DNA of 64,000 nucleotides from Orbicella franksi (taxonomy: Eukaryota). The position numbers and the translations under genes are program-made. Shown here piece by piece: positions 6,301 to 64,000 of the stretch (within the stretch, counting starts at the first letter, position 1; every line of letters starts with the position of its first letter). The notes under the pieces were generated by a model, which saw nothing but the letters and a program-made list of their open reading frames with translations, was not told the DNA's origin and made no database searches. Where the stretch lies: the NCBI GenBank assembly GCA_964199315.1, contig OZ116698.1, forward strand, positions 21,390,001 through 21,454,000, written 5' to 3'.

Positions 6301-9300
6301 ATTTACATGCACCTGTTGAATAAGGAATACAATGTCTTGAGATTCCTTGAATTCGTTTCCATGCATGACTCCTAAAGTCCACCCCCTAGAGTCGTTATTT
6401 GTGGAAAGTGAGCAAAAGAGAAGAAGGGGCCTGGCTATCAGGGTGAAGTACCTGGACAATGTACATGTATAAATATGGCCCTGGCAGGAATCCTGAACAA
6501 GCCAGTAAATGAGGGCTAAAGAGGGCTAATTAACAATTAGACCCATAGCTCGCAAGGGCTAGGAGTCAATAGCCCATGAGGCAAAGCCAAATGGGCTATT
6601 GACCCATGGCCCTTGAGGGTGAAGGGTCTAATAATTAGATAATAAAACAATTATTGTTTTATTATCACCCAACTAGTCAGACAGAAAAAGGCAATAATAA
6701 AGTAAGCAAATGCAAGTTGAAGAAAGATTTATTTGGGACTAAAACAAAAGAAAGCGTCACGCTCAATTGCACCAATTTCGCTACACGAGGACTATTACTA
6801 ATAGTCCTCTAGTAGCTTAGCCAATTAAAATGTAGGATTTGCATTAGTCCACAAGTTGGGTGATACTAAAGAGGAATAATCAACAACACAGAAATATTCT
6901 TTGACCACAGAAACTAACACAAAAGATGCGCAAGAGCGTCTTAAGGAGGACAACCCTGGGACAAGAGATACGTTGCTTGAAAGCCTTAACGACAAAGAGG
7001 CCAAGTCAATGACCCAACACATCCGAACAAGTTGGCATCAGTTCATTTTTGCAGGAGTAGGATGCAAGAGACCACTGCACTAGACAGGTGGTGGTTCACT
7101 GGAGAAAAGTGCAGATCTGCCCAAAAGGAAACAAGGACTGTTGATGTTGATGTCTTTCTCAACACCTGACAGCCACAGAAAGCACTCAAAGCAAACTAAA
7201 GAAAAGTAGAGAAAAACGAGGTGGGATCTTAGTTGGGCCCAGATTCAGTTCAAGTATGTATTTCTACATAATGCATACGAACACGGCAAAGAGACATAAA
7301 AGTACTGCTTGAAAGCTGCACTTTTTTAGAATTTACACCAGGGTTTCATCTGGACATACCCACAAGTAAGAGCACACAAAATTTGAATTTTAGTTTACCA
7401 TTGAACAGGTACATGTAGAGGCACGGTGGCCTCATGGTTAGTGCGCTCGTCTCCAGATCAAGTGGTCCCGGTTTGAGCCCTGGCCAGGACATTGTGTTGT
7501 GTTCTTGGGCAAGACACTTTACTCTCACGGTGCCTTTCTCCACCCAGGTGTATAAATTGGTACTGGCGAATTTAATGCTGGGGGTTCCTCTGCGATGAAC
7601 TAGCATCCCATCCAGGGGGGAGTAGAAATACTCCTAGTCGCTTCATACTAAGGAAACTGGAATATGCTCCGGCCCAGTGGGCTACTTGACTCGTATGCAG
7701 ACTTTACCTTCACCCTATCTTATTGAACAGGTACATAACTTACCTGTGAGTACAAACCAGTACTCTTTGTTCATTCCCTTCATAAACCCGGCATTGCTTA
7801 TTGTCAGCCACCCTTTCCTAATCACCTGAGAGAAAACAATACAAGGTGAGTGTTAATGGGTTGTGGAGAGATAATCTGTAATTGCTTAGCTCAACATTTT
7901 TTCTTTAATATTTAAAGTTTTTTTACAGAACAAAAGCCTATAAAGAAAACAACCAAACAAAACTGTGGGACTGGAAAGTTTAAATCAAAGTACAGAAAAT
8001 GAGAAAAGTTACAACTTTAGTTGTTCCACAATGAAATACAGTATGGTCCATACACATCCAAAATTAACTCAAACATGAACAACAAAATTGAGCTCAAAGT
8101 TGATTTTGCCAAGTTGAACACACCTGGTTTGACACAGTTCTCTTTACTTTTCTTTCTCCAGGGTTGGTACTACTTGATGCCCTACAAGAAAATAATACAC
8201 ATCAATGACAATTCAACTGCATTTTAAAATATTACAGAACTGACTGCCAGCTAAGGGAGCTATCGCTCCCATGCTACCCAACTTCTGGCAGCAGTTCAGG
8301 ATTGCATATCTGGAAAATTAAATGGGCATTTAGTGGCATCTGAGTAATATGCAAGAGACAATGTTGTCTCAGAAGGAGCCCTAAATGCTTTTGAGTGCCT
8401 GTCTGTGCTGAAGGAGCTAGATACACTGTAGAGAGCCAACTGGTGAGGAGCTCAACAAGGCCATGGACTCTCTTGTACCCGGCAAGGGACCTGGAAAAAA
8501 CGGTATCCCTGCAGAGATCCCAAAGTGTTACAAGTCACGCATCCATCCTCCACCAACAGCACAAGATTCTTTGCCTGTGCTGAAGGGAAGGCAGAGTGCC
8601 ACAAGACACAACGGATGCCAATATTCAGTGTCACTAAAAACAAGAGTGATAGGAGCAATTGCAACAACTATCATGGCTTCCCCCTCCTCAGTATTGTCGG
8701 AAACGTCTTTGCTCGAGTAGCACAAATGAGGCTCCAAGTACTCGTGGAGAAAGTCTACCCTGAATCGCTTGCAATGATCTGTTGATCATGTCTTTAAATC
8801 ATTTTCTTGCAGTTTGAATATACTGTATGTTTCATATATTCATGCATATTTTTACCATCTACAGGTATGTAACAGAAATTTGCAACATCCCAGCTCCAGT
8901 TGGCTTGATAGCCCAATTGGTAGGGCATTGCACTTGGTATTGCAGCTCTAAGTCAAGCATTATTTTTAAAGTACTGTTAAAAGTACAGGTATGTACATGT
9001 AAATAACTACAATGATCTCACGTCTTCAAGACTTTCTTTTGCTGATCAAATATTTGATAATTCATATATTCACTTGCATACAGCAGTGGGTAAGTATTAA
9101 CAAAATCAACAAAGCTATCTTGGAACAACCAGAACCAGGTCCCAGTAGTTTTTAAAAACACCATAGTGTTATCCATCCTTGAACAACTAGAGGCAGCCAT
9201 TATTTTTTATCCACCCAGGATCTTAGCAACGAGAAGACAGATGTGGCAAGGTGGAAGAAATATCTATTCCATACACCTGAAGGAGGACTGCCTGTCCTAC

Positions 9301-32900: not shown

Positions 32901-35900
32901 CTTGGTCAGATCTTCAAAGTTTTTAAGAAGGAAGACATGTGTCCTGAAGGGTTCGGAAGCAATGCTTCGCAGCTCCTGTTCATCCACACTGTCTGTCACG
33001 CCAATAGTATAGATCTCGAAATCACAGCTGTCACGCAATATCATGGCATCAGAGGCGGGGTCACCGCCGATATTGGATCTGCCGTCTGTGATTAGGAACA
33101 GCGCTTTCTTGCTGCGCTCGCGGGTCTCAGGCACAATTTCTTCAATGGTCTTATTCAGGGCAAGACGTGTAGCAGTTCCTCCGGCAATAAAGTTCAAGTT
33201 TTCTAAATCATCAAGAAAGACAAAGTTAGGTTTGACACCTTCATAATGGAGCGAAGTGACCTGTAGGTTATTCATTTTCTCTTTCTGTTGTCATAGTTCG
33301 GTAATTCAGTGCACGGGACACGCCCAACTCTCAGTTTAGTGGGGCACCATGATGGCGTCAATACAGAGGAAGAATTCGCAACCTTACACAGAAAATTCCC
33401 CCATCAGCACATCAGCAGGCTAAAACTCGCCCTCATTAGGGAAGGGAATTAAAAATATTTTTTCTTAAGTTCAGTCGTGTGTAGTTAAAATCAAGCAAGT
33501 CGCTGTGTGCAAATGAAATACACCAACTGTAGCTTAATCAACGTCAAACGCCCTGTCAGCCTCCAATAATTTAAACATACCTGGCTATTGTAACTTCATT
33601 CGTTGTATATATATATTGGCACATATAGACGGTTAAAAGTGCTTCCTGAGCCAACAAAGATGCGAACCAAAAGGATCACGAGGATTGACAGTCCCGATTC
33701 GGTGAATAATAAAAACTGGTTAAAAAGAGACCGAAAATGGACAACTCTTGGTTTAAAAAGATAAAAAATGTATAAAAATTTATAAAACGTTTCGGTCTCT
33801 CGACCTTCGTCAGCTACCCTGATACATATATTAGATATATATATTGGTATCCACTGTGAGAGGGGGTTTCACACGAAGCTGCAGTGGTGTAACCTTTTGA
33901 CAAATGACCTCGATTTTACCATACTTCTTTATTAGTCTAACTGCTGACTACTAGTGGAGGCGCGGTGGCCTCATGATTAGTTCGTTCGACTCCGGATCGA
34001 GCGGTCCGTGTTCGAACCCTGGCGGGGTACAGTGTGTTGTGTTCTTGGGCAAGACACTTTACTCTCACAGTGCCACACTCTCCACCCAGGTGTTTAAATG
34101 GGTACCGGGGAATTTAATGCTGGGGGTTAACCCTGCGATGCTCTAGCATCCCATCCAGGAGGAGGTGGGGCGGGGGTGTAGAAATACTCCTAATCGCTTC
34201 ATGCTATAGAAAACCGGGATAAGCTCTGGCCTGATGAGCCACTTGGCTCATATGCAGAATTAACGTTACCTACAGTCTAACAATGCAGAAGACCTGACTT
34301 ACCAAGAGTTGCAATAGCCTCGTTTTTGTTGGGCATGGCATTTGTTTTCAGATTGAAAATAACTTTGGCTGTCGAGCTGAATGTAACAACAGCAACTCTT
34401 GTCCCCATTGCAGAGTTGGATATTCCAAACTCGTCGATGATCGTTTTGGCGAAAGCGATTCCTTTTTGGAAGTTCTTATTTCCGACGCTTGCCGAGCTGT
34501 CGAGCACAAACACCAGATCGAGGCCACCAGCACCGGAGGATAAACCTGCCCGAGCCAAGCTGTCAGTTGTCGTCCAACTCAGTTTGTCGATGAAATGTTT
34601 ACGCAGGTTTTCTGCAACCTTCTTCAGACTTCTCAAAGGATCTGGAGAAAAAGCGTCGTCAATGACTCATTTGCCTCAGGAAATAGCCGCTAACAATACG
34701 AAAATATCGAAAAATTGATTTGTATTACGGTTTAAGCGATTTTTTGGTCATGCAAGAATAAGCAAAGCTAAGGCAAGTGAATGAAAATTAAGCAAAAGCT
34801 AAAATAAAAGTTAAACGAGATGCTAACAAGAAATTATAAGCAAATCAAAACAATATTAGTGTCTTGGACTGACTGACTGACTGACTGACCGACTGACTNN
34901 NNNNNNNNNNNNNNNNNNNNNNNNNNNNNNNNNNNNNNNNNNNNNNNNNNNNNNNNNNNNNNNNNNNNNNNNNNNNNNNNNNNNNNNNNNNNNNNNNNNN
35001 NNNNNNNNNNNNNNNNNNNNNNNNNNNNNNNNNNNNNNNNNNNNNNNNNNNNNNNNNNNNNNNNNNNNNNNNNNGACTCATTGACTCACTGACTGACTAA
35101 CTCACTGACTCACTGACTCCCTGATTAATTGACTGACTTCACGGATCAATATTTGCAAAACTGGCTTGAAACCCAGAATAGGTCATCAACTAGTTCAAGG
35201 GAGAAATTTACACAAAAGGAAGTTAAAAATAATTATCAATTTGAAAAGTACATGACATTAATTACAAAGCCAGCCAGTATTAGTCTGACACGGGTTTAGA
35301 TTAGGATGTCATGCATTACGAAGACAAACTGGCAAATATGAAAATGTTTAGTATGCAAAGAAAATTGCATAGAACATGAACAGCATCTCCTTGGGGTAAA
35401 CCACTTTAAGACGTGAACTGCATTCGCATATTTTAAACGCAGATACTTGTTACACCAGTTTAAGTGATAACGACAGGACCGAGTATTTACTTACAGCAGA
35501 CAATAAAGTTACATCTAAAATAACAGGTAAATATATCCATGTTTCGAAAAAGAAAAGAGATTCTTAATTTACAAATGTAATAAGCACTATGAGTTTTCTA
35601 ATTAATTGTTTACGGATATGGTAAATGTTATTTTGTATTTTTATTAGTTAATGTAACCAGACCAACACCTCCCTTTGGAAAGTAAGGCGCAATAAAGATA
35701 TACTATTACTGACTCACTGGCTCACTGACTGACCGACTGACTGACTGACTGACTGACTGACTGACTGACTGACTGACTGACTGACCGTCCGGCTGACCGG
35801 CTGACTAAACTGCTGACTGACTGACTGACGGACGGATGGACGGACTGAATTACTGATTGATCGACAAGCTGGCTGGCTGGCTGAATGACTGAATGGCAGT

Positions 35901-42286: not shown

Positions 42287-45200
42287 TTAGAAATAGTAGT
42301 TAGGTCCAGGTGACGAGGAATCGTTGCGTCTCTGTTGGTAGCTTGTGCTGCTGCTGTACACGTGAACTGTGTTTGTCACAGATGAATTTCCTCCTGAATA
42401 AGCTGTTTGGTCATCAGCCTGTTAAAGAAGAAGACATTTTCACAGGAAGCAAGGAAACAGTGAACGGTGCAAGTAATTTCCGGCATAAGACTAACACCCA
42501 AATTGTGAGCTACTGTTTGTGACGCGCAATTAATCATAATCAAAATCGTAGTCTACTTCTGTTTAATAAGAGAATGCTCCTGGAAAAAAATACTTAAGGA
42601 GCTAACCATGGTATCTAACTGAACGGAAAACAGAGGTCGGCCAATGTTTTCTAACCAAAGAAGGTAATGACTTGGTTTTATACGAGTATTTCCCGGCACG
42701 TAACACCGGCTACACGTGTTTGTTCCGAGGTATAAAAAGGTCGCATTTTAACTCCTGTACAACTCTTGAACCACAACTCTTGTGTCGCTGGTATGATTTC
42801 TGGCGATAGTTTGGATAAAACAAGTCTTTGTGTGTGTGAAGGACATTCATGTTACCTCCTGCATGACTTCAGTTTTCCTGTCATTCAAGTGATCCAGCTT
42901 TTCACCCAGTTTCTCAAACTCTTTCTCCAGTCGATCATTGTTTGATTGTAAGGTGTCGTTGTTAGAGTACTTTGAACTTCGATCGGAAGCCTTTAAACAG
43001 AATAAACACTAAAAGAGTTAAACATGCATATATTGATTGAATAGAAGATTTTGCTGGTGTTTCCTATTGGAAAGTACAAAAAAATAATCGTTAGAAATGC
43101 AGGTATTTAAAATAGTTTTTGAGAATCTGACAACCCCGCGCCCCTCACCCCACGGGGGATTACAACACTTTAAGGGGCGGTTTCTAAGCCAAGCCACATT
43201 TGTTCTGCTGGGAAGTAATGATGTCGGCTTGGTTCTTGGTGAATGAAATCTTCGTTTATTCTAAAGACATCACTCCCGCTACAGTGTATTCAAAGCATTA
43301 GGAATTTCGAAAGACTATTTCCGACATCCTTGGAGCAAAATTTTTTAAAGAAATGGGTTTTTAAATCATTTAAAAATCGAACACAATGGTTTCGAGCAAC
43401 GCCAGCCATCACGAAAGGTGTCAAGTTGACACTGAAATCACGAGTGCTTATTTCTCCTCAGACGGGAGCAACGCATTCCAGACGATAACTACAATTGTTC
43501 ATGAAGTCAGCAAAGATAAATCAAAGGTACCTGATGATTTTTTTCTTTTTCATAGTCCGTGTTTTGCTTATTTTACCGCCTAAGATTAATTAACAATTAT
43601 TCCATGAAACCGCGTTGGATATGAAGTGATAAATAACCAACGAGCGCGTAGCGCGAGTTGGTTATGATCACTTCATATCCAACAAGGTCGAATGGAATAA
43701 TTGTTTTAGTATATTCTTAATCGGGTTTTTGCCGCCGATTTTTATTTCAACAATTTTACAGAGCGGAAAATTTTTAAACTTGGCGCACTGTTTTCCATAT
43801 AAGGTAAAACTCCGACTAATGGCTCATAGTCGGAGTTTTTGAGCCAATCAGAGAGCTAGAAATGCAATAGTCGGAGCTGAGAATATACTAATATGTAAAT
43901 GGTTTGCCATTGCTGCAACTGCTTAAAGTAAGCTTACATATATAGCTAACATGTATGCAGGCGATTACATGTTCGTTTAAGTACTATTTTCCAAGTTTTT
44001 GCTTTTTTTCGTAGGCTTTGATATTTACTTCTGAAAGTTATACTGAAACAGTTGTTCGTCAAAGGGGGAGTGAATAACTGACATTCCCTTCGCCGAATAA
44101 TGACCAATAATTTGTTAAATAAGTTCTTGCTCTAGTGTACCTGAATTATAATGCCATTTATATCTCCCTTTTTGAACTATTGCAATGTCTGCTTCGAAAT
44201 CCATATGAACAAACTGTCCTTTATTTATCAGGCCATTCCTCGATTATTAAGTTTGCTTATTTTGAGCTGCTCGTCATTGTTATGGCTAATAAAAAGGGGG
44301 TTACATTCTCAAAAAGCAGCTTCACAACCTTTGTTGCCCGCGGCATTTACATTTTCATTCAGCCGCGTTCGCCAAAACCCTTGTTATTATTCCACTGGCA
44401 CTTGGTCTAATATGTGCTTAAGGCATACCGTAATTTAACGGTACGATTTTAAAGTACATGTATTTACCTTTTGATCTCCGTTGGTGTGTGGTTCAAAGAA
44501 TGACACAGGAGGTTTTGAGGCTGTTGCTGCATTCAACTCCTGCGCAGTTTTCAACACTGGACAATTCTTTGCACTGTCCCACTGGACGAGCTCTCTGTTG
44601 TAGAACTGGGCCTCTTTTGTTGCGATTTTTAACTTCTCGTTTTTGTGTCTTAGTTCTTGGAGTTCTCGTTCCAGGAGACTTTGTTCTTGTCTTCTTGGAC
44701 TCGTCGCTTGCGGCTCATTCTTAAGCGTATTGATGTCTCTCCCAAGGCTATAGGCAATCAGTTGTTGTTCGGACAAGACGCGTTGAAGTCGCGTCTTGCT
44801 TTCCTGGAGCTCGAATATTTCGCTTCTTAAGGTCGACAAGGTATTCTCATAAGTCTTCCTTTCGTCTTGTGATCTCCTGTAAAATTCTTGTTCGAGGAAG
44901 ATCTTCAGCTCTTTAGTAATCTTTTGTGTGTTTTGCTCGATTTCCATTTTCTCGTGCTCGAATTGGTGCTCCAGCTTGCTTTTCTCCTTCTTAAAGTGTT
45001 CTTCTAATTCTGTGACCTTTCGTTCTGCCTTAGCAAGTTTATCTTTTAGCTCGGCAATTGTTGCATCTGTTGTCCTCTGATAAGCTTGAACAACTTGCCT
45101 GTTTTCTTCGCGTAGTCGGGTCACGAGTTCTTGTTTTCCTCTTTCGACTTTGTTCTTCCATTCTGCCATGTCCGCTTCGTATTTCTTCTCTAGCTCTCGT

Positions 45201-48200
45201 TTTTCCCTCGAGAAGGAGTCGGAAAGATGCGTCTTTTCTTCTCTCAGCTTCGAAAGTTCTCGGGACATAGCCTCGAGCGTGACATTTAACAATTCTTTCT
45301 CATGTTCCAGTTTTCCTGACAGTTCATCTTTGTCTCTCTGGCTTTGTTGAAGTAAAGCATCCTTCTCTCTTAACAGCATCTCGTTCTGCGTCCTCAATTT
45401 CCTTTCCTCGTCCAGCAACTGCTCTTTCTCTGTGCGGAATTCTTTCTCCAGTTTGTAAAGGGAATCTTGCAGTTCCTTCTCACGAGTTGACACTTCCGCT
45501 GTTATCTTAGCCTGGTATTCAAGACGGAGTTTCTCTTCCATTTCCTCTCTGTAGGTTTTAAATTTTGCCTCCATATTCAACTTGTCTATTTCAGAACGTT
45601 CTATGAGTTCAAGCCTGTGTTTTTCTCTCACATCTGTCAACTTCATTTCTAACTCATACTCTATCTTTCGGCGTTCTTCAGTATAACGGTAGGTCAATTG
45701 CTCTTTGGTCCTTTCAATCGTCCTATCTAAGTCGTGGATCCTGCTCTCCAGTTCCGACTTGTTCCTTGTTAGGGTAAGTATCTCGGAGTTATACCTCTCC
45801 TCGATTTGAGTATACCTCTTTTTCTCTTCCTGTATTCTTTTGTTGTAGTCCTCGATAAGCTGCTTCTTTTCTGCCAGCAATTGCTGTTGCAGGTCGTTCT
45901 TCTCCTTTTCAAGTTCTTTCCGTACCTTCTCTATCTCCTTGCTGGTAACCTCTCTGAAGCACTGCTCGCGCTCATAGCGAACTGTGTTTATCTCGTGTTT
46001 GTAGGTTTGTTCGAGTTGGTTCAGTTTTCTTTCACACAGTTCTCTTTCATTTGTTGCTTCTTCTTTCAAATCCTTTAACTGCTTTTCGTAATCTTCCTCT
46101 AAAGTTTTCTTTTCCCTTGTAAGAGTTTCTCTTTCTTCTCGATGTTTGAACTGGATCTCGTCTGTTTTTCGTTTCCATTCTCTGCTCTTTTCTTCAAGAA
46201 TGTAAGACTTCTGTTGCAGTTCTGATCTCAACGTTTCAGCCTTCTTTCTTTCAGTCTCGTACTTCTCCATTAAGCTTTGTAGCTCAAATTTGAAATGCTC
46301 CTCGTTTCTTTTCTTTTCTTCAGCAGCACACTCGACAGAATCTTTGAAGCGTCTAATAACGCTCTCTTGCTCACTAATGACCTTTTGCAGTCGTTCCACT
46401 TCCCCAAGTGCCTTGTCTTTTTCACTGACGAATTTTCCCCTTTCGGTCTCGTGAGTCTTTTTGAGTTGTTCTATCTCGCGTTTAGACGTTTCCTCTGAGT
46501 CTGAAAGCTCTTTAGCAAGTGAATCTAATTCTTCTGTCAGCCTTCTGTTCAGATACTCAAGCTCTGTTATCTTTAATTTTAAGTCGCCGTTTTCTTGGTG
46601 AAGCTTGTTCTCCTTGGCTGTCAAACTCTCAAGTTGAGAACGTGAGCGGAACATTTCGTTGAGCATCTCACGGTTTGCTATTTCCAGCTCCACAGAAACC
46701 TTTAACTTCGTCTCGTAGTCTTTTATTTTCAAGTTGAGCTCGTTAATCTCCGCCTTATTTTGCTGTTCATTCTCGTTAGCAAGTCGTTCAGCCTCTTCTA
46801 ATTGCAAACGCAACTGTTCTGATACATTATTCAACTTTCTGTTTTCGTCTTCAAGCTTCTCAATTTTGCTTTTAAACGCGAGGAGTTCCTTCTCCCATTC
46901 TAGATTTTGTCTGGTAGCTTCCTCTTCGAGTCTTGCCACAGTTAACGTCAGCTCTCCAACCGTCACAGTAAGCTCCTGCTTCTCTTTTTCCAACATCTCA
47001 TTAGTTGATGTCTGATCTTCCAGTTTCTTTTTCAAACTAGCCACAGCATCCTCGTGTTCACTTTTTCGGTCATTCATTTGTTTTTCGTGACTGTTCTTTA
47101 AATCTGTCATGTTGTTTACATGTTTTTCCTCGGCATTGCTGTACTTTCTTTTCCAATTTGTCACTTCCCTCAAAAGCTCTTGAATTTCATTATGTAGCTT
47201 GCCTTTCTCCTGGACTTCTTTGTTCAGCTCGTCTTGAAGTTTCGATACCTGTGACTGACACTTCGATTCTGTCTCCTTTCGCTCTTTGATAATCCGTTCT
47301 TCGTAATTACTTATAATCTCCTTCTTGGTCATTTCAAGACTTTGTATCCGACCAAAGAGACCCTTCTTTTCCTTTTCCAACTCGGAGATTTTTTGCTTTA
47401 GCGCGGCTACCTGAGCATCAAATTCTTCCTGACTATCTGTTAGGTTGTTTCGTACTCGATCCAAATCTTTTTCTGTTGCTGCCAGTTGCACGTTTTTCTG
47501 TTCAAGCTCTTCTTTCATCTGCCCAATAATTTCCTTGAGATTGGCCAGTTCTCTCTCATATTTGATCTTATTGTCTTCCATCCACTTCTCTCGTTTCTTT
47601 GTTTCTTCTTTCAGCTCAGCTGTTTCTGTTTTATGACGAGCAGTTTCTTCTTTGTTCTTCCTATCCAGATTTTGGCAACTTTCTGCTAGTCTCTCGTTTT
47701 CTTTTGTAAGCTCTGTTATCTTCAGATCATTCTGGTTTTGCAACTCCCTGATCTTGCTCTCGAGATCTCTTACGGTTTGCTCTAGTTTAGAGATGACAGC
47801 CTCTTTTTCGCTTTTCAGTTGCTGTAACTTCTGGTTGTGTTGGGTCTTTAACTGTTCTATTTCCTTTCTGAATTGTTTTTCGAGCTCGAAATTCTCTTTT
47901 TTGAACTTTTCAGTCATCTCTTCCTTCAAGGCTTTTATCGTTGTCTCATACTGCTCTCTTAATTTTAATGTTTCTTTACGGAGTTTGTCAAGCTGTGCTT
48001 GTAGTTTCTTTTTCTGCGCCTCGAGCTTGTCTTTTTCCGCTGTAAAATGGGAATTTCTCTTCTCAAAATCTTGAAGCAAATCTGTAATCTTCATTTCGTA
48101 CTTCTTCACAATTTCGCTCTGTCTCTCGATTAGTTGTTGTTTTTCATGGTCGAAGTTTTCTTCAAGCTCGCTCTTTTCTTTGTCACACTTCTCTTTTAAG

Positions 48201-50620
48201 GTGGTTTTAATTTCTGTGATTTTAGCCTTGTAGGTCTCTTCTATTGTTGTACATTTTTTGGTCAGTTCTTCTTCTTTCCTTGAATGAATCTCTTTTAAGG
48301 CTTCTTTTTCTTCCCTTAGTTTGTCCAGTTTTAATTTCAGGTCATCTTGCAAATCGGTTATTTTCTTTTCGTACTCAGTTACAGTTTGTTCGTGAGTTTC
48401 GGTTAACTGATTTCTTTCATCAGCAAATTCCTTTTCCGCGTCTTCCTTTTCCTTCTCATATTTTTGTCGCAGTTCTTTCTTGGTGTCTTTTATGAGCTGT
48501 TCATACTTATCGATACTGTTAGACAACTCTTCCCTTAAACCTTGAATCTTCTCTTTGTACTTTTCCTCATGACTCTCCATGGCGGCTTCTAAATCTGCCA
48601 ATTTCTTCTCGTATTTCTCTTTGATTCCAGCTATTTGTTCTTCGTATGCTTTCATTGTGCTTGCATTGGAAGCTTTCAGTTCCTCTATCTGTTTTGAAAA
48701 GTTTGATTCTAGTTCTGTCTTTTCTTTGTTGCACTTTTCAGTAATTTCTTCTTTAAGCTCCTTTATTTTCAATTTATGCTGTTTCTCTGACTCAGCCATT
48801 TCTTGTCTTAATGCCTCTATTGCTTTCTGGTGTGACTCCTTTAAGCTCTTCCATTCATTTTCCATCTCCTCGACTTTTGCATCCAGTTCTTCTTGGAGAA
48901 TGACAATCTTTTCTTCGTATTCCTTTACCACTGCATTGTGTGATTCTATCAAGGTAGTCTTTTCTTTGGCCAATGTTTCTTCCATTTCACTCTTTTCTTT
49001 ATTGAATTTTTCCGTCATCTCGTCTTTCGCATCTTTCAGTTGTTTCTCATGACCCTGTTTCAATGCCAGTATTTCTTGTTCCAGTTTTTCGATGTTGGTT
49101 CTATTGGTCTCTTCCAGTCGTTCCTTTTCTTTCTCTATCTGAGCTATCTTAACTTCGTATTCTTGCTGCATGCTAGTGATTTTGGTTTCATAAGCTTTGA
49201 TCTCCATCTTATGACCTTCAATCAGTTCTTCTCGCTCTTTCATAAAGTTTGCTTCAATCTCGTCTTTCTCTTTTTCCAATTTTTCTAACAGCTCTTGCTC
49301 CAGAACTTTCATGTCTTCTTTGTCCTTTTGTTCAAGGGTCGTAAGCTTCTCCTGGCACGATTCAATTTCCGCAGCATGTTTATCTATTAACTGTGTTTTC
49401 TCTGCCTCCAATTTCGTAATAGCCAACTTGTTTTCCTTTCTTATTTCTTGGATTCGGACTTCACTTTGCTGGATGAGTTTCTTGTATTTGGCGATCAATT
49501 CTTGCTTTTCTGTATCGAACTCGTTTTCCATATCATTCTCCTTCTGTATGTACTCCATCTTTAGCTTATCCTGAAGTTCCTTCATCAATAAGTTGTGGTT
49601 TTCTTCAAGCTCTTTGCACCTCCTCTTCAACTCTGCTATTTCCTCCAAAGAACTATTGTAACTTGCCTCAAATTTATCCTTCTGAGTTTTGAGTTGTTCT
49701 AACTGTTCTTCGTATTGCTGAGTGATAGAAGTTATCTTAGCCTCGTATTCTTCTAGAGCCTTTTCGTGTGCTGCTATAAGCGACTCTTTCTCTTTTGTGC
49801 ACGCAGCTTCCATCTCACCCTTTTCTGCTTGGAACTTTTCCGTAAGCTCAATTCTCAAGTTGGCCAGCATTTCTTCGTATTGCTTTTCAAGAGCAGAGCA
49901 TTTCTCGCGCAGTGTTGTTACCTGTGTAGTGAGGCTAGCATTTTTCTTTTCTGATTTTTCTTTGTCGATTTTTAGTTGCCCTAGCTTCGTTTCGTAATCT
50001 TGCTGAATCTGCACTATCTTGATCTCATATTCCTTTGTGCTCTTCTGATATGTCTGCAACAAGGCCTCGTTTTCCGCTCGCAGAATCTGTATCTGTTCCT
50101 CGAAATTATCTTGCATTTCATCTTTTTCGCTCGAAAACCTTGCCTCCATCTCTCCCTTCTCCATCTTGCACTTGTTCGTGAGCTCTCTCTTTACATCTTC
50201 AATCATTCTAAGATTCTCTATCTCCATGGCGGAAATTTTCTGTTTGAGTCGTTGAACTTCTCTTTGGGACTCATTGTACTTTTTCTGCCAATCGTCTCTC
50301 TCTATTTTAAGTTGCCCGAGTTTGACTTCGTAATCCTGGATGATCTTTGTTTTGTTAAGCTCATATTCGGTGACAGATTTTTGGTACATATCGTTAAGGG
50401 CTTTCTTCTCTCCTTCCAGCGTTTTTATCCTTTGCTTGAGGGACTCTACTTCTGCACTGTTATCCATTGGAATTGTTCCCACGACCTCCATGTCCCAAGT
50501 TCCCCCTTGGTCTTCCATTGGCATTTCGTTGGTGACCACAGAGTAGTTAGTAGGCTCTACGTAGTAAGGACCTCCCCAACCATCTATTGGTTGTGACTCA
50601 TGAATTTCGACTCCAGACAT
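42287..50620 (-). CDS. Giant coiled-coil protein B (about 2139 aa), no recognisable catalytic domain
   Basis: Exon 44468-50620 (2051 codons, donor AAG|GTAAAT), exon 42856-42990 (ASDRSSKYSNNDTLQSNNDRLEKEFEKLGEKLDHLNDRKTEVMQE) and terminal exon 42287-42418 (ADDQTAYSGGNSS...PGPNYYF*). All junctions are phase 0. E/K/Q/L-rich sequence. Confidence 0.85.
43592..43870. mobile_element. Palindromic interspersed repeat in a gene B intron
   Basis: Hairpin 43592-43705: AACAATTATTCCAT..TTGGATATGAAGTGAT..ATAACCAAC / GTTGGTTAT..ATCACTTCATATCCAA..ATGGAATAATTGTT. Confidence 0.7.
47840..50386 (-). repeat. Nine degenerate protein-level repeats of 91-94 aa (first unit 112 aa) in gene B
   Basis: Recurring H/Y-x6-YE-x-KI...E(L/M)TEK(F/C)xxEKxE(L/M)ExxFxxE(K/R)xxL pattern. 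Unit lengths counted as 112, 94, 94, 91, 91, 91, 91, 91, 94. Confidence 0.75.
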
Positions 50621-55673: not shown

Positions 55674-58600
55674 TCATGTTAGCTGGGGAGTCGATTGCTG
55701 ATTCTCTCCTGCACTAAAAGAAGTACTTTTCATGTCTTCTGAAGTGAAATTCCCACCCTCGGTACTCTTTACAAATCGCGTATTTTCGAGATGGCTATTG
55801 GCCGAAACATTTCTGCTTCCCAGAGAAGTTCCCATTGCTTGGTTGAACGAGTCAGTGATTGTTGGCTCACTTTGCCGCTGGCCAGTACCCGTGCCTCCAA
55901 CGACTCCTCCGCTGGATAGTCCACCAGAGCCTGCCAATGGCCTTCCAAGTGCATCCGAAATGCTTCCTGTTGCGTGCATGGTGTATCGAACCCTTTCTAG
56001 TATATCGCCATACGATTGTCCAGTACCTATCAAAGACTGGCCATTTGTTGTGTTAAATATGGGACAAAGGTTTGGCTGAAACACCCTGCTCTCAGATCTC
56101 ATGCTACCAATGTTTGGACCAAGTGAAAAGTCGTTAGCTCCTCTGATATCTGACTCTCCGTAGTATCCTAGATTTGACCGTAGCACATCGTTTCTGCTTA
56201 TGCTCTGTAGACGAACGTTGTAAAATACATTACGTAAGTGTTGACGCGACAAACCAATTTCAACATTACATAGTAGGTGCAATGTGTTACTTAATGTATT
56301 CGAACCTCAGCGTTTTTGACTTGATAAAGAAAAAGTAGACATGCATTCTGCTTCTTGTAACTTTGGTAGACAGAGAAGAGAGATTAAAACGAGTCTAAGA
56401 TTTGTTTAGTTATATAAAGTGCCTCACCCACTCCTCCCTAGTAGCCGCCTCCAAATCCTTGTTACGTGTTTCCAAAGTCCTCAGTCTGTCTCCCATAACT
56501 CTGAGTTCTCTCTCAAGCCTCTCCGTTTTGGCCTGAAGTGTCATGTTCCTTTGCTCCATTAAGTTAATTTGGTCTTTATACTGTCGAACGTCGGATTGTG
56601 ATGACTGATGGGATATCTCAGAGCTAGCCTGTTGAGAAACCAAATGAAAAACCTTTCAAAAAAGCATCATCAAACACTTTTAAGCAACTTCGTCTGAGTG
56701 ATTTATTAGTGAACTCACCAAAGCATTTTTAATTGTGTTTGCCATCATATGTTTCCCAATAACATCAGTTCTTTTCTCCATTTCTTCCCTCGCTTTGCTA
56801 AGCTTTCGTTTCATCTCCAGTTGTATTTTCTCCAATTCGTCTTCAAGCTCTTGTTTTTCGTTTTCAAGAGTTTCTTTCAATTCAGTTCTTTCTCTCTTCA
56901 GTTTATTAATTTCTTGCTGAAGTTCTCTAATCTTCTCCTCCATTGGGCGTTTCTCGCGATCTACTCGCTCGAAGAACTCTTGTTCCATTTGAATTACTAC
57001 TCTGTTTCTTGACAACTGCTCTGTTCTTGGACTGGAATTTCCCGACAACTCGTTCTTTAGCAACTTTTCCTGAATTTCTTTTCTCTGATCTTGCAAGAAA
57101 GAGATTTGCTTTGTTAAGGCCTTTACTGTTTGCTCAAATTTTTGTTTTTCATCATTCAACGTTTTTCTGTATTCCCGTTCCATTATCATCTTTAACTCTT
57201 CCTGGCTTTGGATGAGGGTCTTTTCGGCATTGCGCTTTTCTTCCAGGTATCGCGTTTTCTCACTCTTGTGTTGCATTTCCATTTCTTTGAACTTCCGTTC
57301 CGTTAATGACATCTTTCGTCTAAATTCATCGATTGTTCCTTGTAATCTTTTCCTTTCAGAAGCCAACCGTCCTTCGTTATCTTCTCTTATCCGAGATAGT
57401 TCGTCATCTTTATCTCTTGCAACTCTATCGCGCAAATTGTTCTTTTCTACCTCATGAATTCTGGTAAGCTTCTCCACTTCCTTTTTGTAACAGTTCTTTA
57501 ATTGTTGTTTCTCGCATTTAAGAGCATTGACTTCCTTTGTGAGAGCATGTATTGTTTCCATTAGCTTCCTTTTCTCGCTTTGCATCTGGTGTTGCAATTC
57601 TCTTTTTTCCTCCTCAAACTTTGAATGTTGATCTCTCAGTTCACCTTGGAAATTTTGCCCCCTTCTACGCATTCTCTCATTATCGTCCGTACCATATTGC
57701 TTTCTTTGTGGAACCGACATATCAGCCATGTTGCCAGAAGCATTTTGATTTCCATGCTCAACCTGGAAAACATTTCCTTGTCTTGGCATCCTGCTTTCTT
57801 CGTTAAAACTGTATTGATTCTTCTGTGTGCCAACAACAGCATCAAAACCACTTTGATTGCCCTGTTCAACTAACCAATTTTGCCTTGACATCCGAGTATC
57901 ATCGTCAAAATCATATCGGTTCCTCTGTGTGGGTGACACGCCAACCATAGCTTTCGAACCATTCCGTTCCGCAGTGCGAAGTCTTTCCTCGAAGTCGGCC
58001 CTTTCTTTGAACAGCTTGTCACTAAGAAAGTCTTGGTCTTTTCTGTGTTTTCTCTTCAAGTCGTCTATTTCGTCTTCAAGCAAACGACGATAGCTTGTGA
58101 GCTTCTCTTTGGCCTCTCTCACCTCGTCCTCTAACTTTGCCTTTTCCCTTGAGGCACGATTTAAAATTTCTCTCTTTTCTTCGTTGAATCTTCTCTCCAT
58201 TTCTTGAATTGTAGTCTCTGGCTCCCCTTCCCTAGACTGTCCATTATAGTTTTCTCTTCTCGTAATACTGGATTCGAAAGCCATTGTATCCCTTGCTCCG
58301 TTATCCCTTATTCCACTGGTTGATAGTGGCCCCCAGACTGTGTTTTTGACATTGCTATCATTTCCATATGTTCCTGGGGCATTTGCCGACCTTGCATCTC
58401 CCCCCCGGATGCTAGACTCAACGTCTCGAAGCCGCTTTTGTAGACTGCTGTTTTCCTTTTCAAAGTAATCTTCTAACGACTGTTTTTCTCTCTGAAACTC
58501 TTCTGACATTCGTCGCTTTTGTGCTTCAAGGTTCCTGAGGTCATCTGCATGCTTTTTATTGACATCTCGTAGCATTGCCTCTAGGTTTTCAACTTCTTGT

Positions 58601-61600
58601 TTTAATTTGTCATCTTTAGAATGAACAACCTGGCTTCTAAAATCCCCTGATATACCATATGAGTTTAAAGCATGGGAAGACGATGTCCCGTTTAAGCCTC
58701 TACTCTGGGGCCCAACGTTCGCCGATATTTGGTCTTCTAACCGCTGAATTTTCTCTTCAAGTTTTCTCGTTGTGTCTGTTTGTACTTGAAGTTTTTTCTC
58801 GCAAGCCTCTCTCATTTTTGTTACTTCTTCTACAGCTCTTGCTTTTTCGTTTTCGTAATTTCTTACCAAAGAAATCTTTTCCTGTCTGAAGGAATCTTCA
58901 ATATCTTGGATTTTGCGGGTGAAGCGTTCAGTTTCGTCTGTAAGCTTCCTGTTACGCCTCTCAACTTCGTCTAGAGTACGAGATAAGTGATCAACCTCGC
59001 GAGTTAGATTCCTTTGAGCAGCCAAAAGTTCATCTCGCTTTCGAGTCAGATGGGTGACCTCTTCGTCAAGATCGTCGTTTCTCCTCTTTAGCTCTTTGTT
59101 TCGCTTGGCTTCTTTTTTCAAATCCTCGAGTTTCTCCTGAAGGTCTACTATTTCACTTTGTAATTCCTTTTGCGTTATTGCCCGTTCGTTGTTATTTCTT
59201 GAAGGCACCTTCGTTTCATTTCGATTCGAAGAAGTCTCATTATTCTTTAAATTGTCAAAAACATCTTCGTTACGACCATTTCTGTTACCAGAGAGAATTT
59301 CATTCATCTTGTATAAAAGTTTCTTGTTTTCCATCTCTAGTGTTTCTCGCCGTCGAATTTCGTCGGTTAGCTGTTGCTGAAAATCACTGTTACCCCAACC
59401 AGGTGTTGTATTCACTTCCCTTTGACCGCCTGTAAAGCTGAAATTATTTTCCTGGTTGGAAAAGAGCCCACTTTTAAAAGCTTCAGCTTCTTGTCTGCGT
59501 TTAGTTTCCTCTATCAGCGACCTCTGCAATTTGCTTATTTGTGTGAGATATTCCTGGGTAATTTCGTTAGCTTGTCTTTCTATCATGGCCTTAATTTCCA
59601 TTCTTTCGCGAGTGAAATCCTCTTGCAATCTTTGGTTTCTTTCTTTAAGGTCCATGATATCGCTTAGCAAGTACTTCATATCACTGGCGAGTCTCAGCTT
59701 ACTTCTTCTCTCATCTTCGTACCTTTGACGAGCCATTTCAGTATCTTGGTATTCCACCTCTATCCCATGATATCGATCTCTGCCACTGGTTGATGAAGTT
59801 CTCAGCTCTTCTCTAAGTCTACCCCTCTCTTCTTCCAGCCGTTCTATTTTGGATTTTAAGTCTTTTTCTTGATTCTTTGCAAGCATTGTATTTGAAAGCT
59901 GAGTTTGTAGTCTCATTTCCATTCCTTGAATTTCGTCTGAATGTCTTTTCTTGAGGTTTGCAATCTCGTCGTCCTTCTCTTCGAGGATTCGTTCGTTGTC
60001 TTTTAAAGATCTCTCCAATTTCCGGGCTTTCTCTTTCAAACGAGACATCTCTGTTGTTGATTCCCTTCTTATCTCCTCTATCCTCTCTTGTTGATGCTTG
60101 TTTGTTCTTTTCATCTCTTTTATTGTTCCCTCTTGCCTCGCTCTTTCTCTTTTTAGCTCAATAAATTCATTTTCCCTCGCTAAACCAAGCTCGATATTTT
60201 TCAGACTTTCTTGGCTCTCGTTCTTCTTGCTCAAAACGTCAAGAATTGCTCTAAATTCTCTGTTTTCCTTCTCTAATACACGGATGTTTTTCCTATATTC
60301 TAGGATCTCTTCTCCGTCATCACCTTGGTCTAATGTCATACTACTTATGTCTAATGTGTGGGTCGTCATTCTTGACTTTGCCCAGTCATTCAGTTTGCTC
60401 TGCAACAACTCATTGTCCCTTCTTAGGGAGCGAATGGTTTCATCAAATCGATTAATACTGTCCAACATTCCTTGATATCTTTCTTCAAGATAAATCTTTT
60501 CGCCGTTTTCATTTCGATATTCTTTTTCAAACTCTTCCTTCTGCCTCTTCTCTGCTTCATATGCTTTTTCCAAACGTTCCTTCTCACGCTTTATTTGATC
60601 ACATTTAGACTTGTAGTACTCATAGTCAGCTGACATCTGGTTTGAATTTCTAAGAGTTTCTCTTGCACCGCCATGGATATCACAAACATAGTTGTAACCA
60701 CAGCCACGCACATCGCCGTATTCGTCCAGTGAAACCTCGCGTGAACTTGTGATGTACTCTATCAAGCTGCTGTAATCTTTTGCGATATCGCAGCAATGGT
60801 GGTGATCTTGAGGAATGGTTAATTGTTCTCTGTGTGAAATTAACTCTGTTTCTTTTTCATGGCGTAGCGCATCATAACGTGCTTCTAGGAACTCTTTGTC
60901 TTTCTCAAGTCTGCTAATCCTCTCCACAAATTGATCTATTAGTATGTCATGATGGCAGGTTACTTTTTGTGTTACGGGAGACCTGATTTCCTGTGTTTGT
61001 TTAGACGTATTTGTTTCATCTTCGGTATCCTTATCAACTTCTCCTGATTTCGGCAGGTCCTTCTTGCTCTCGATTTCTTTTCCTGGTTCTGTAATTGTTC
61101 CATTCGGTTCTCCAGTCGTTTTTGTAGTTACAGTGTTCCTATCATGTTTTTTGTCATTCTCCTGTAAAGAAGTATCTTGGATGACTTCACTGGAATCAAT
61201 GAGGCCTACTTCTTCTATGCTCCAGCTTTGGTCAGGGTCTTTCTCGTCTACAGTTCCAATGACTTCCACACTCCAGTTTTGTTCTGGTTCTTTTTCTCCT
61301 ATCTCTCCTATTTTCTCTATGGTCCAAGTAGATTCTGTTTTATTTGGCACACCTGAATCCTCTAGTTTCTTTTCCGCAGGCAGCTTCTCCTCTTGAATGT
61401 CATTTGAGTCTAGTGGCATTTCTTTGACTTCAATCTCTTCCATGGGCAGTTGTTGTTCTTCACTAGAATCAATAGTACCTACTTCTTCTGTACTCCAGCT
61501 TTGGTCAGGGCCTTCCTCGTCTACAGTTCCAATGACTTCCACACTCCAGTTTTGTTCAGGTTCTTGTTCCCCTATCTCTCCTATTTCCTCTGTGGTCCAA

Positions 61601-64000
61601 GAGTCTGCGATATTTGGCACATCTGAATCCTCTAATGTCTTTTCCGGAGGCAACTGCTCCTCTTGAATGTCATTTGTGTCTGATAGCATTTCTTTAATTT
61701 CAATCGCTTCTGTGGGCAGCTGTTGTTCTTCACTGCAATCAATAGTACCTACTTCTTCTATATTCCAGCTTTGCTGCTCCTGTGTATCTACCCCTTCCGC
61801 AAACCCATTCATCTGACTACTTTGCATATACCCTGGAATTTCCTGCATGGACATTTTTTGCATAGCCATTTCACCTCCCGTAGGCATTTCTTGGACAGTC
61901 GTTTCTCCTCCCATAGGCATTTCTTGCACAGTCGTTTCTTCTCCCATAGGCATTTCTTGCACAGTCATTTCTCCTCCCATAGGCATTTCTTGCACAGTCA
62001 TTTCTCCTCCCATAGGCATTTCTTGCACAGTCATTTCTCCTCCCATAGGCGTTTCTTGCACAATCATTTCTCCTCCCGTAGGCGTTTCTTGCATCGTCGT
62101 TTCTCCCAGAGGCATTTCTTGCATCGTCGTTACTCCTCCCACAGACATTTCTTGCACAGTCATTTCTCCTCCTACAGGCATTTCTTGCACAGTCATTTCT
62201 CCTCCCATAGGCGTTTCTTGCATCGTCATTTCTCCTCCCGTAGGCATTTCTTGCATCGTCTTTTCTCTTCCCATAGGCATTTCTTGCACAGTCATTTCTC
62301 CTCCCATAGGCATTTCTTGCACAGTCATTTCTCCTCCCATAGGCATTTCTTGCATCGTCATTTCTCCTCCCATAGGCATTTCTTGCACAGTCATTTCTCC
62401 TCCCATGGACATTTCTTGCACAGTCATTTCTCCTCCTACAGGCATTTCTTGCACAGTCATTTCTCCTCCCATAGGCGTTTCTTGCATCGTCATTTCTCCT
62501 CCCGTAGGCATTTCTTGCATCGTCTTTTCTCTTCCCATAGGCATTTCTTGCACAGTCATTTCTCCTCCCATAGGCATTTCTTGCACAGTCATTTCTCCTC
62601 CCATAGGCATTTCTTGCATCGTCATTTCTCCTCCCATAGGCATTTCTTGCACAGTCATTTCTCCTCCCATGGACATTTCTTGCACAGTCATTTCACCTCC
62701 CATAGGCATTTCTTGCATCGTCGTTTCACCTCCCAGAGGCATTTCTTGCATCGTCGTTTCACCTCCCATAGACATTTCTTGCACAGTCATTTCTCCTTCC
62801 ATAGGCAGTTCTTGCATCGTCGTTTCTCCTCCCATAGGCATTTCTTGCACAGTCATTTCTCCTCCCATAGGCATTTCTTGCATCGTCATTTCTCCTCCCG
62901 TAGACATTTCTTGCATCGTCATTTCTCCTCCCATAGGCATTTCTTGCACAGTCATTTCTCCTCCCATAGGCATTTCTTGCACAGTCATTTCTCCTCCCAT
63001 AGGCATTTCTTGCATCGTCATTTCTCCTCCCATAGGCATTTCTTGCACAGTCATTTCACCTCCCATAGGCATTTCTTGCATCGTCGTTTCACCTCCCAGA
63101 GGCATTTCTTGCATCGTCGTTTCACCTCCCATAGGCATTTCTTGCATCGTCATTCCTCCTCCCGTAGGCATTTCTTGCATCGTCGTTTCACCCCCCATAG
63201 GCATTTCTTGCATCGTCATTTCTCCTCCCATAGGCATTTCTTGCACAGTCATTTCTCCTTCCATAGGCGTTTCTTGCATCGTCATTTCTCCTCCCGTAGG
63301 CATTTCTTGCATCGTCGTTTCTCCTCCCATAGGCATTTCTTGCACAGTCATTTCTCCTCCCATAGGCATTTCTCTCACAGTCATTTCACCTCCCATAGGC
63401 ATTTCTTGCACAGTCATTTCCCCTCCCATAGGCATTTCTTGCACAGTCATTTCTCCTCCCATAGACATTTCTTGCACAGTCATTTCTCCTCCCATAGGCA
63501 TTTCTTGCATCGTCGTTTCACCTCCCATAGGCATTTCTTGCACAGTCATTTCTCCTTCCATAGGCAGTTCTTGCATCGTCGTTTCTCCTCCCATAGACAT
63601 TTTTTGCACAGTCATTTCACCTCCCATAGGCATTTCTTGCATCGTCGTTTCACCTCCCAGAGGCATTTCTTGCATCGTCGTTTCACCTCCCAGAGGCATT
63701 TCTTGCATCGTCATTTCTCCTCCCGTAGGCATTTCTTGCATCGTCGTTTCACCCCCGATAGGCATTTCTTGCATCGTCATTTCTCCTCCCATAGGCATTT
63801 CTTGCACAGTCATTTCTCCTTCCGTAGGCATTTCTTGCCCAGTCATTTCTCCTCCCATAGGCATTTCTTGCACAGTCATTTCTCCTCCCATAGGCATTTC
63901 TTGCACAGTCATTCCTCCTTCAACAGGCGTTTCTTGTATCGTCATTCCTCCTTCAATTGGCATTTCTTGCATAGTCATTCCTCCTTCAATTGGCATTTCT
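55674..64000 (-). CDS. Giant coiled-coil protein A with Met-rich repeat N-terminal region; 5'-truncated by the window (more than 2670 aa)
   Basis: Frame is open from the window edge to 56719 (2427 codons, donor TTG|GTGAGT). Next exon 56428-56628 (ASSEIS...TLQAKTERLERELRVMGDRL..., donor TGG|GTGAGG), then terminal exon 55674-56204 (SISRND...PQLT*). All junctions are phase 0. Confidence 0.85.
61195..61775 (-). repeat. About 2.2 copies of a 270/273-bp (90/91-aa) acidic coding repeat in gene A
   Basis: The anchor CCAGCT (Ser-Trp codons on the minus strand) recurs at 61765, 61495 and 61222, giving spacings of 270 and 273 bp. Confidence 0.9.
61861..64000 (-). repeat. Coding 33-bp minisatellite, about 65 units visible, consensus QEMPMGGEMTV
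   Basis: Unit CAAGAAATGCCTATGGGAGGAGAAATGACTGTG repeated in frame to the window edge, with one 30-bp unit (MPLGETT) and no stop or frameshift. Confidence 0.97.

Follow-up and report, generated by a model that had tools for sequence, protein, structure and literature searches.

The stretch of DNA analysed here (the window: 64,000 nucleotides of Orbicella franksi, GenBank assembly GCA_964199315.1, contig OZ116698.1, positions 21,390,001 to 21,454,000 of the forward strand) ends in a tandem array of 11-residue units rich in methionine (Met), hereafter the main array, which is transcribed coding sequence of an expressed gene. It is a coding minisatellite within the very long first coding exon of this expressed but so far uncharacterised coiled-coil gene of stony corals; tentatively, at a little short of an even chance, we read the N-terminal low-complexity domain (the N domain) that it helps to form as a flexible polyanionic projection. 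The main array belongs to an unannotated, coral-specific protein family; the Met-rich low-complexity domain and the coding minisatellite are both already known kinds of element. Coordinates are positions of the window, and those beyond 64000 are window-equivalent.

Tandem Repeats Finder reported a 33-bp tandem unit in 65.2 copies (89% matches, score 3143) at 61852-64000. Set in register, the array comprises 66 units (61849-64029), 65 of them inside the window, and its coding sense is the minus strand:

61849-64000 within the window (end at window-equivalent 64029), minus strand: main Met-rich array of 33-bp units, consensus MPMGGEMTVQE

The sole length change among the 66 units is an in-frame 3-bp deletion in unit 59. 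The 727 encoded residues include 181 Met (24.9%), 133 Glu (18%), 126 Gly, 95 Thr, 64 Gln and 58 Pro, while the basic residues amount to 5 Lys and 3 Arg; Asp, Cys, His, Phe, Trp and Tyr are absent and the net charge is -125. Three Met are found in 38 units, two in 20, four in 6 and one in 2, and the spacing of Met residues yields 52 MxM, 24 MxxM and 33 MxxxM motifs. The units fall into 29 distinct sequences, variation being lowest at Gln10, Glu11 and Thr8 (64/66 each), then at Gly5 (62/66) and Glu6 (61/66). The first-pass annotation, made from the letters alone, had described a Cys-free, aromatic-free and almost base-free acidic repeat with about a quarter or more of Met, and this description is accurate. 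Its two Glu per unit are borne out by exactly two in 57 of the 66 units, and its typical range of 2-4 Met covers 64 units, the other two having a single Met. The array does run beyond the window, as stated there, the main array by 29 nt only, after which come a spacer and a second, diverged array.

Three of the six frames are free of stops across the array (minus frame 1, plus frame 0 and plus frame 1), so that the lack of stops within the array is in itself no proof of coding. The Met-rich minus frame is the only one that extends beyond it (2,910 open codons, from 56683 to window-equivalent 65412) and it is also the frame conserved in the orthologues from other corals, which together identify it as the coding frame. 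The unit length of 33 bp is a multiple of three, and the units are arranged head-to-tail and in frame with the flanking exon, as befits a coding minisatellite. In support of coding, none of the unit variants introduces a stop, as 5 of the 99 possible single changes would, and the one indel is 3 bp long. The His/Ser/Phe-rich frames of the plus strand were considered as the product and rejected, being open over the array only; they encode HFLHSHFSSHR-type and ISPPIGISCTV-type units over 61849-64000, and one of them is given as a 787-aa open reading frame (ORF). On the scaffolds of the sister species, gene callers annotate antisense array ORFs of 250 and 401 aa, which are probably repeat artefacts.

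Transcription was assessed with a word test, in which sampled 31-mers of the unique part (57000-61800) were sought in RNA-labelled runs. Of these 31-mers, 11-81% were present in 14 such runs, which come from at least 5 studies; several of the runs are polyA-selected and carry the label coral or coral metagenome. For the stretch of the two arrays, 16-36% of the words occur in the RNA runs vs 48-68% in the best DNA runs. Placement of contigs and reads covered the 3' flank and 11 array units of L005 (flank/array boundary at L005 5349). RNA contigs of run X4, which as contigs cannot show transcript ends, cover 28 of the 30 bins of this region, and one of them (record 16, 357 nt, L005 5068-5424) bridges the boundary. 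In the boundary bin (L005 5349-5539) the summed depth of array words in RNA is 193 vs ~6 in the flank, compared with 1081 vs ~60 in a DNA run; the array/flank ratio in RNA is at least as high as in DNA, as expected if the array is kept in RNA. In the next bin (L005 5540-5710) the RNA depth is 0.47 vs ~207 in the DNA run. The concern that the region might be spliced out finds no support, as the X4 contigs show no splice joint over the 3' flank and the 11 units.

From N- to C-terminus, the frame encodes a conserved head, an older array, two W-motifs, the main array, seven W-motifs, a Cys/His patch and a coiled coil. The older, more diverged array (window-equivalent 64204-64968) consists of ~23 units of the QEMPIEGGMTM and QEMSMEGGMAM types (255 aa, 25.9% Met), and like the main array it has no Cys. 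Both arrays together make up the N domain of 1,188 residues, with 264 Met (22.2%), 17% Glu, 16% Gly, 10.5% Gln, 0.8% Lys+Arg and a net charge of ~-200. The parts of the predicted gene downstream of the main array are as follows:

61774-61848, minus strand: short non-repeat linker (MQEIPGYMQSSQMNGFAEG...) that joins the main array to the W-motif modules and has a similar counterpart after the older array
61185-61773, minus strand: 270-bp module in 2.2 copies, with seven W-x-x-E-x-[VI]-G motifs at ~61224-61767
60670-60957, minus strand: Cys/His patch (CHHD..., HHHCCD, C-x-Y-x-x-C-x-x-H), conserved in all coral orthologues
56719-60669, minus strand: coiled coil of ~1,300 residues, heptad-rich and rich in Glu, Lys and Arg, at the end of the giant exon
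56629-56718, minus strand: putative 90-nt phase-0 intron (TTG/GTGAGT ... CAACAG/GCT), from splice consensus and conservation
56428-56628, minus strand: putative exon 2 of 67 codons (...DVRQYKDQINLMEQRN...), with 75% identity to a stretch downstream of the L008 orthologue
55676-56204, minus strand: putative exon 3, which encodes a Ser/Gly-rich tail and runs to a stop codon, with 50% identity to L008 over 165 residues

The full W-motif, W-x-x-E-x-[VI]-G-[TE]-[IV], occurs in nine copies, seven in the 270-bp modules and two of the W-x-x-E-E-V-G-T-I type in the spacer between the arrays (L005 ~7530-7700, outside the window); it is found also in most orthologues and in the neighbouring giant-ORF gene, and AlphaFold2 assigns the spacer a predicted local distance difference test score (pLDDT) below 30. 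The Cys/His patch looks like a metal-binding or disulfide module. The "long rod" that had been proposed to carry the array is indeed encoded in the same exon, as ~1,370 residues of coiled coil.

The likely start of translation is the ATG of MSAQVEGQ at codon 49 of the frame; the sister-species frame opens just 15 codons upstream of the same Met, and no conserved upstream exon was found in 17.5 kb upstream. At L005 8886-8888 (window-equivalent ~65386) an AGG (Arg) codon precedes V-D-K, where in two other genera the orthologue starts with M-[VL]-D-K; the first in-frame ATG lies 40 codons beyond this AGG, and a stop closes off the upstream part in the sister species. From these sequences, the position of the start codon thus seems to have shifted within the family. 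Counted from the first conserved ATG, the exon-1 product has 2,862 residues as a mechanical ORF, or 2,851 up to the putative splice donor, with 10.7% Met overall, and with the two putative downstream exons the full protein probably reaches ~3,090 residues. The two-splice model is inferred from splice consensus and conservation; the RNA contigs showed no joint. The mechanical ORF ends within the putative intron, which takes in its final 11 codons and its stop (56680-56682); this stop is probably intronic, because the orthologues remain similar as far as ...KNAL, diverge exactly at the consensus donor, and conserved exons lie beyond. A random-primed RNA contig of X4 covers L005 131-205 (56631-56705), i.e. 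most of the putative 90-nt intron, which points to unspliced RNA or to intron retention that would end the protein at ...VSSLINHSDEVA.

Neither a signal peptide nor a transmembrane segment was detected in the protein, which starts with the non-hydrophobic MSAQVEGQ. Since no conserved exon was detected upstream either, a cytosolic location is probable. In the Pfam scan no family fits, and the matches of the coiled coil are below threshold (e.g. KASH_CCD, 21 bits vs the 43-bit cut-off). PF16058 ("Mucin-like") reached a whole-sequence score of 51.8 bits vs a cut-off of 28.7, with no single stretch passing alone, which looks like a compositional match summed over many repeats. Membership in this family was not adopted. 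As to the secreted, O-glycosylated and Ser/Thr/Pro-rich setting of such proteins, no signal peptide was found, and the array contains more Met (25%) and Glu (18%) than Thr (13%) or Pro (8%).

A search with the coiled-coil part as a query retrieved only 18 relatives among 1.84 billion representative proteins, and the array alone retrieved nothing at E <= 1e-5 among proteins of ~390-1,250 aa, a result that may reflect composition correction. The ESM Atlas features correspond to generic coiled-coil clusters with low shared-feature counts, and no relevant publication on a methionine-rich protein of corals turned up in the literature searches. The closer relatives, drawn from coral metagenome or genome assemblies (e.g. 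Tara Pacific), share the plan of a Met-rich N domain, W-motifs (in most), Cys/His patch and coiled coil. In the orthologues P0001-P0013 the N domain has 8-24% Met per 100 aa vs ~2% in the coiled coil, and every stony-coral orthologue examined has a Met-rich N domain, so that the lack of Met enrichment that the first-pass annotation had named as a possible objection did not appear. These N domains are built on QEM[PS]-type motifs and cannot be aligned across genera. Four of them compare as follows:

P0036: N domain of 980 aa, 14.2% Met, period of 51 residues
P0004: N domain of 1,104 aa, 9.5% Met, period of ~69 residues
P0009: N domain of 762 aa, 15.1% Met, period of ~87 residues
Orbicella franksi: N domain of 1,188 aa, 22.2% Met, period of 11 residues

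In all four, Glu makes up 16-17%, Gln 10-16% and Lys+Arg no more than 3%. Met enrichment thus persists through a complete turnover of the repeat period between genera. Members of one 90%-identity cluster differ in the length of the N domain only. The sister species (81% identity in the conserved part) has the same two 11-mer arrays with the same W-motif spacer between them, and its older array has 26% Met vs 25.9% here. Its scaffolds (L018 and L019) carry a 100-N gap inside the main array, and upstream of this gap the arrays of the two samples are 70 residues apart in length, in part through a duplicated block of ~59 residues, which represents either a copy-number polymorphism or a collapse of the short-read assembly. 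This difference and the one within the cluster are both read from short-read assemblies or from ORF calls whose start may fall inside the array.

In three homologues of greater distance, which include a protein of the sea anemone Actinostola, the sequence begins with the Cys/His patch, and a Met-rich N domain is lacking. Such hexacorallian homologues (e.g. KAK3732848.1, a hypothetical protein of Actinostola sp.) share the Cys/His patch and the coiled coil with 25-29% identity over ~500 residues. In all three the patch is enlarged at the N-terminus (CCCG...HSH...CCGH...HDCCH). KAK3732848.1 (P0019) also has C-terminal Gly/Met/Ser-rich GMGSGM repeats at residues ~1600-1829 (GMGSGMVGMGSGMAG, ~14% Met), which are unrelated to the coral array and stand at the opposite end of the related protein.

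In the reading we favour, the N domain would project as a flexible polyanion from the end of the coiled-coil rod, and selection would keep its length, its charge and its Met/Glu/Gln make-up rather than its exact sequence; from the pattern of conservation we take selection to act on the make-up of the domain, its charge and the motif T-x-Q-E-M-P/S. The Met side chains might serve as weak, adaptable hydrophobic contacts in multivalent self-association or partner binding, and their oxidation to the sulfoxide could weaken these contacts and make the assembly sensitive to oxidants. The disorder on which the projection depends had been proposed in the first-pass annotation and agrees with a charge-hydropathy calculation, which places both arrays on the disordered side, and with a pLDDT of only 55-63 from ESMFold2, but not with AlphaFold2, whose result is suspect (see below).

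Several observations weigh against this picture. Within the array constraint is weak: of the 99 possible single changes of the unit, the variant types seen include 8 of 18 synonymous, 23 of 76 nonsynonymous and 0 of 5 stop changes. The Met positions are more variable than Gln, Glu, Thr or Gly (Met1 58/66, Met7 48/66 and Met3 44/66, with position 9 occupied by Val in 34 units and by Met in 30); Met3, Met7 and Val/Met9 are the most variable of all and change towards Thr, Leu, Ile and Val. For the close pair of orthologues P0009/P0052 the ratio of nonsynonymous to synonymous substitution rates (dN/dS) is 0.86, which is not significant and derives from very few changes. Homotypic association should be disfavoured by the net charge, -0.17 per residue, in the absence of cations or basic partners, and AlphaFold2 predicts regular beta structure instead of disorder. 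As regards expression, the array is supported in RNA by contigs from a single random-primed library, in which intron sequence is represented as well; the raw-read polyA runs X23 and X24 placed 0 reads, which is no test of presence; and the support stands at the level of RNA, the protein being predicted.

The same weak constraint between units is what would be expected if the array were a tolerated coding minisatellite, in a domain that needs only length, acidity and lack of structure, with the Met content being a founder effect of slippage or unequal exchange. The 66-unit block is a recent local expansion: a 287-bp stretch at 62144 recurs without a mismatch 8 units away, at 62408, and the identity between units decays with distance along the array. 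The period and copy number differ between genera, and the copy number may also differ between the two sister-species samples. The last nine units of the sister species have ~1.4 Met each vs ~2.4 here, and we therefore read part of the extreme Met content as the chance of which Met-rich unit was amplified. Chance alone accounts less well for the remaining data. Met stands at 4-7x the coiled-coil level in every orthologue although the N domains are unalignable across genera, and in two species Met makes up ~26% of the older array. For P0005/P0006, a pair of orthologues with dS ~0.08, the dN/dS of the Met-rich domain is 0.55 (Fisher p = 0.002), which marks moderate purifying selection, and that of the coiled coil is 0.37; Met, Glu, Gln and Gly are kept better than Ile, Val, Leu, Ser, Thr and Pro; Met itself is kept at 95% vs 86-91% for Ile, Val and Leu, though it has no synonymous escape. 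Because the Met/Glu/Gln-rich domain is kept in orthologues and evolves at this dN/dS, pure neutrality appears unlikely. The neutral expansion that the first-pass annotation had set up as its null hypothesis is thus weakened by the composition kept across genera, the dN/dS and the older array of two species, though for the Met content as such it keeps some likelihood. On balance we regard the tolerated minisatellite as possible but rather unlikely.

Alternatively, the ~264 exposed Met could act as a sacrificial antioxidant that consumes H2O2 or HOCl, is regenerated by the methionine sulfoxide reductases MsrA/B and protects a rod-attached structure in a host of photosymbionts. This would suit the occurrence of the Met-rich domain in all stony-coral orthologues examined and its absence from the three distant homologues that start at the Cys/His patch, and a Cys-free domain with 22% Met matches the methionine-rich proteins that are reducible by Msr enzymes (PMC3514235). 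A stoichiometric sink needs an abundant protein, though, and the RNA word depth is low (2-9), albeit a poor measure of expression; we consider this role improbable. At a similarly low level we place the more elaborate possibility that the protein is a lineage-specific stony-coral scaffold whose ~1,000-residue Met-rich N domain acts as an oxidation-gated assembly switch and would be a redox sensor of a structural kind, far larger than Pbp1 and unrelated to it. In such a switch, reduced Met would hold rods or a partner together, and oxidants derived from symbionts or stress would release them reversibly via MsrA/B.

The array could instead fold into a beta-solenoid or a rod of stacked beta-hairpins with a Met/Val core, one strand and turn per 11 residues, which would extend the coiled coil. 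AlphaFold2 run without an alignment does predict one strand (EMTVQE) and one turn (MPMGG) per unit, with the best model of the main array at pLDDT 83 and a predicted template modelling score (pTM) of 0.72, and the weak PDB matches are all beta-solenoids, the first of them curli CsgA (8c50). The spread among the five models is nevertheless wide (52-83 in the main array; 32-70 in the older one, whose best model reaches a pLDDT of 75-93), and the first PDB match itself has E = 1e-3, probability 0.11 and a template modelling (TM) score of 0.14. The matches in the AlphaFold DB are other short-repeat proteins (e.g. "salivary proline-rich" and "mucin-like"), ESMFold2 assigns the array units a pLDDT of 55-63, and two Glu per unit would stack uncompensated. 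With near-perfect repeats, AlphaFold2 is documented to build solenoids that score as confident yet are unrealistic, unlike other predictors (PMC11795689), and the predicted solenoid is probably such an artefact; we give the folded rod little credence.

Finally, a Cu(I)/Ag(I) buffer of thioether sites, to which the MxM and MxxM motifs of the array and the hint of some metal binding in the Cys/His-rich patch of the family might point, is scarcely credible, as Met-only Cu(I) sites have micromolar affinity, are used in oxidising compartments and would be outcompeted in the cytosol by the thiols of glutathione or metallothionein, whereas this protein, with no targeting signal detected, is probably cytosolic, its array has no His or Cys, and no Ctr or copper-resistance family matched in Pfam.

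The minus strand also carries, at 44435-50620, another giant ORF without introns; it encodes 2,061 aa, nearly all coiled coil, with its own ATG, no Pfam match and one W-x-x-E-V-V-G-T-I motif near the N-terminus. That the two giant ORFs form one gene was considered and rejected, given the poor conservation upstream of the ATG of the second. A coiled-coil ORF of 2,064 residues is found ~7 kb downstream of the orthologue in both L008 and L009, and the gene pair is therefore syntenic and conserved in tandem. The window itself has an assembly gap at 34899-35074. A genome-wide search for further copies of the array returned this locus only, plus an unrelated 33-bp satellite. The latter (L016), with a period of 11 codons, forms two blocks ~23 kb apart (G000:C1:20135211-20136359 and 20157810-20159327) and has several open frames (STATELPCYCH, LPLNCHATA and AWQFSGSG types), matching the Met array through periodicity only.

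To our knowledge, Met-rich low-complexity domains are rare and few of them have a demonstrated role (e.g. Pbp1 and TDP-43). The family described here offers a domain of ~264 Met that is kept in kind, not in sequence, across several coral genera, and thereby a natural, Cys-free and highly repetitive substrate for testing selection on Met content itself. It also offers routes to testing whether assembly is controlled by oxidation and whether there is any bearing on oxidative stress in symbiotic corals. The domain has probably been overlooked so far, because the array, with 8 Lys/Arg in 727 residues, is judged from its sequence to be almost invisible to tryptic proteomics, and because short-read assemblies break or collapse in it, as the gaps in the sister-species scaffolds illustrate.

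Among known systems, the curli-like beta-solenoids gave as the best structural match the weak one to CsgA, obtained from an AlphaFold2 model of an unreliable kind. With Ctr1 and the bacterial copper-resistance proteins it shares the dense MxM and MxxM spacing of Mets motifs; those motifs face the extracellular or periplasmic space, and no such domain or targeting signal was found in the coral protein. Cys-poor methionine-rich proteins (>20% Met) are fully oxidised by peroxide and fully reduced by MsrA/B (PMC3514235), and the N domain resembles them in exceeding 20% Met and in lacking Cys; the characterised ones have ~32-50 Met each and are mostly bacterial or seed-storage proteins, whereas in the coral protein only a domain (264 Met) exceeds 20%. 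Another cnidarian protein with a Met-rich repeat of unexplained Met content is cnidoin, the Hydra nematocyst elastomer, with a repetitive Gly/Gln/Met-rich disordered domain of 17% Met and the motif QMQGCGQQXP (PMC4321713). Cnidoin differs in being short (403 aa), secreted, Cys-rich and flanked by minicollagen Cys-rich domains, while the coral protein of ~3,000 aa is strongly acidic, has no Cys in the array, and shows neither a signal peptide nor a Cys-rich domain of this kind.

The closest parallels in function are offered by yeast Pbp1 (ataxin-2) and TDP-43, whose Met-rich low-complexity domains form, through contacts that Met provides, labile assemblies that melt on exposure to H2O2 and are restored by Msr enzymes (PMC8394241; Kato et al. 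2019, cited therein). As in the coral protein (24.9% Met in the main array, 22.2% over 1,188 residues), a Met-enriched low-complexity region is attached to a larger protein. Their domains are of ~100-150 residues, have no tandem array, are not polyanionic and belong to RNA-binding proteins with Lsm or RRM domains. The coral domain is of ~1,190 residues, consists of arrays of 11-mers with a net charge of ~-200 and sits on a coiled-coil rod with no RNA-binding domain; no Lsm, LsmAD or PAM2 was found in the coral protein by Pfam, its relatives are coral and anemone coiled-coil proteins only, and any assembly behaviour would be ascribed to it by analogy. Pbp1 and TDP-43 are thus the nearest functional precedents for the coral N domain, to which they are not homologous and in comparison with which they are far smaller.

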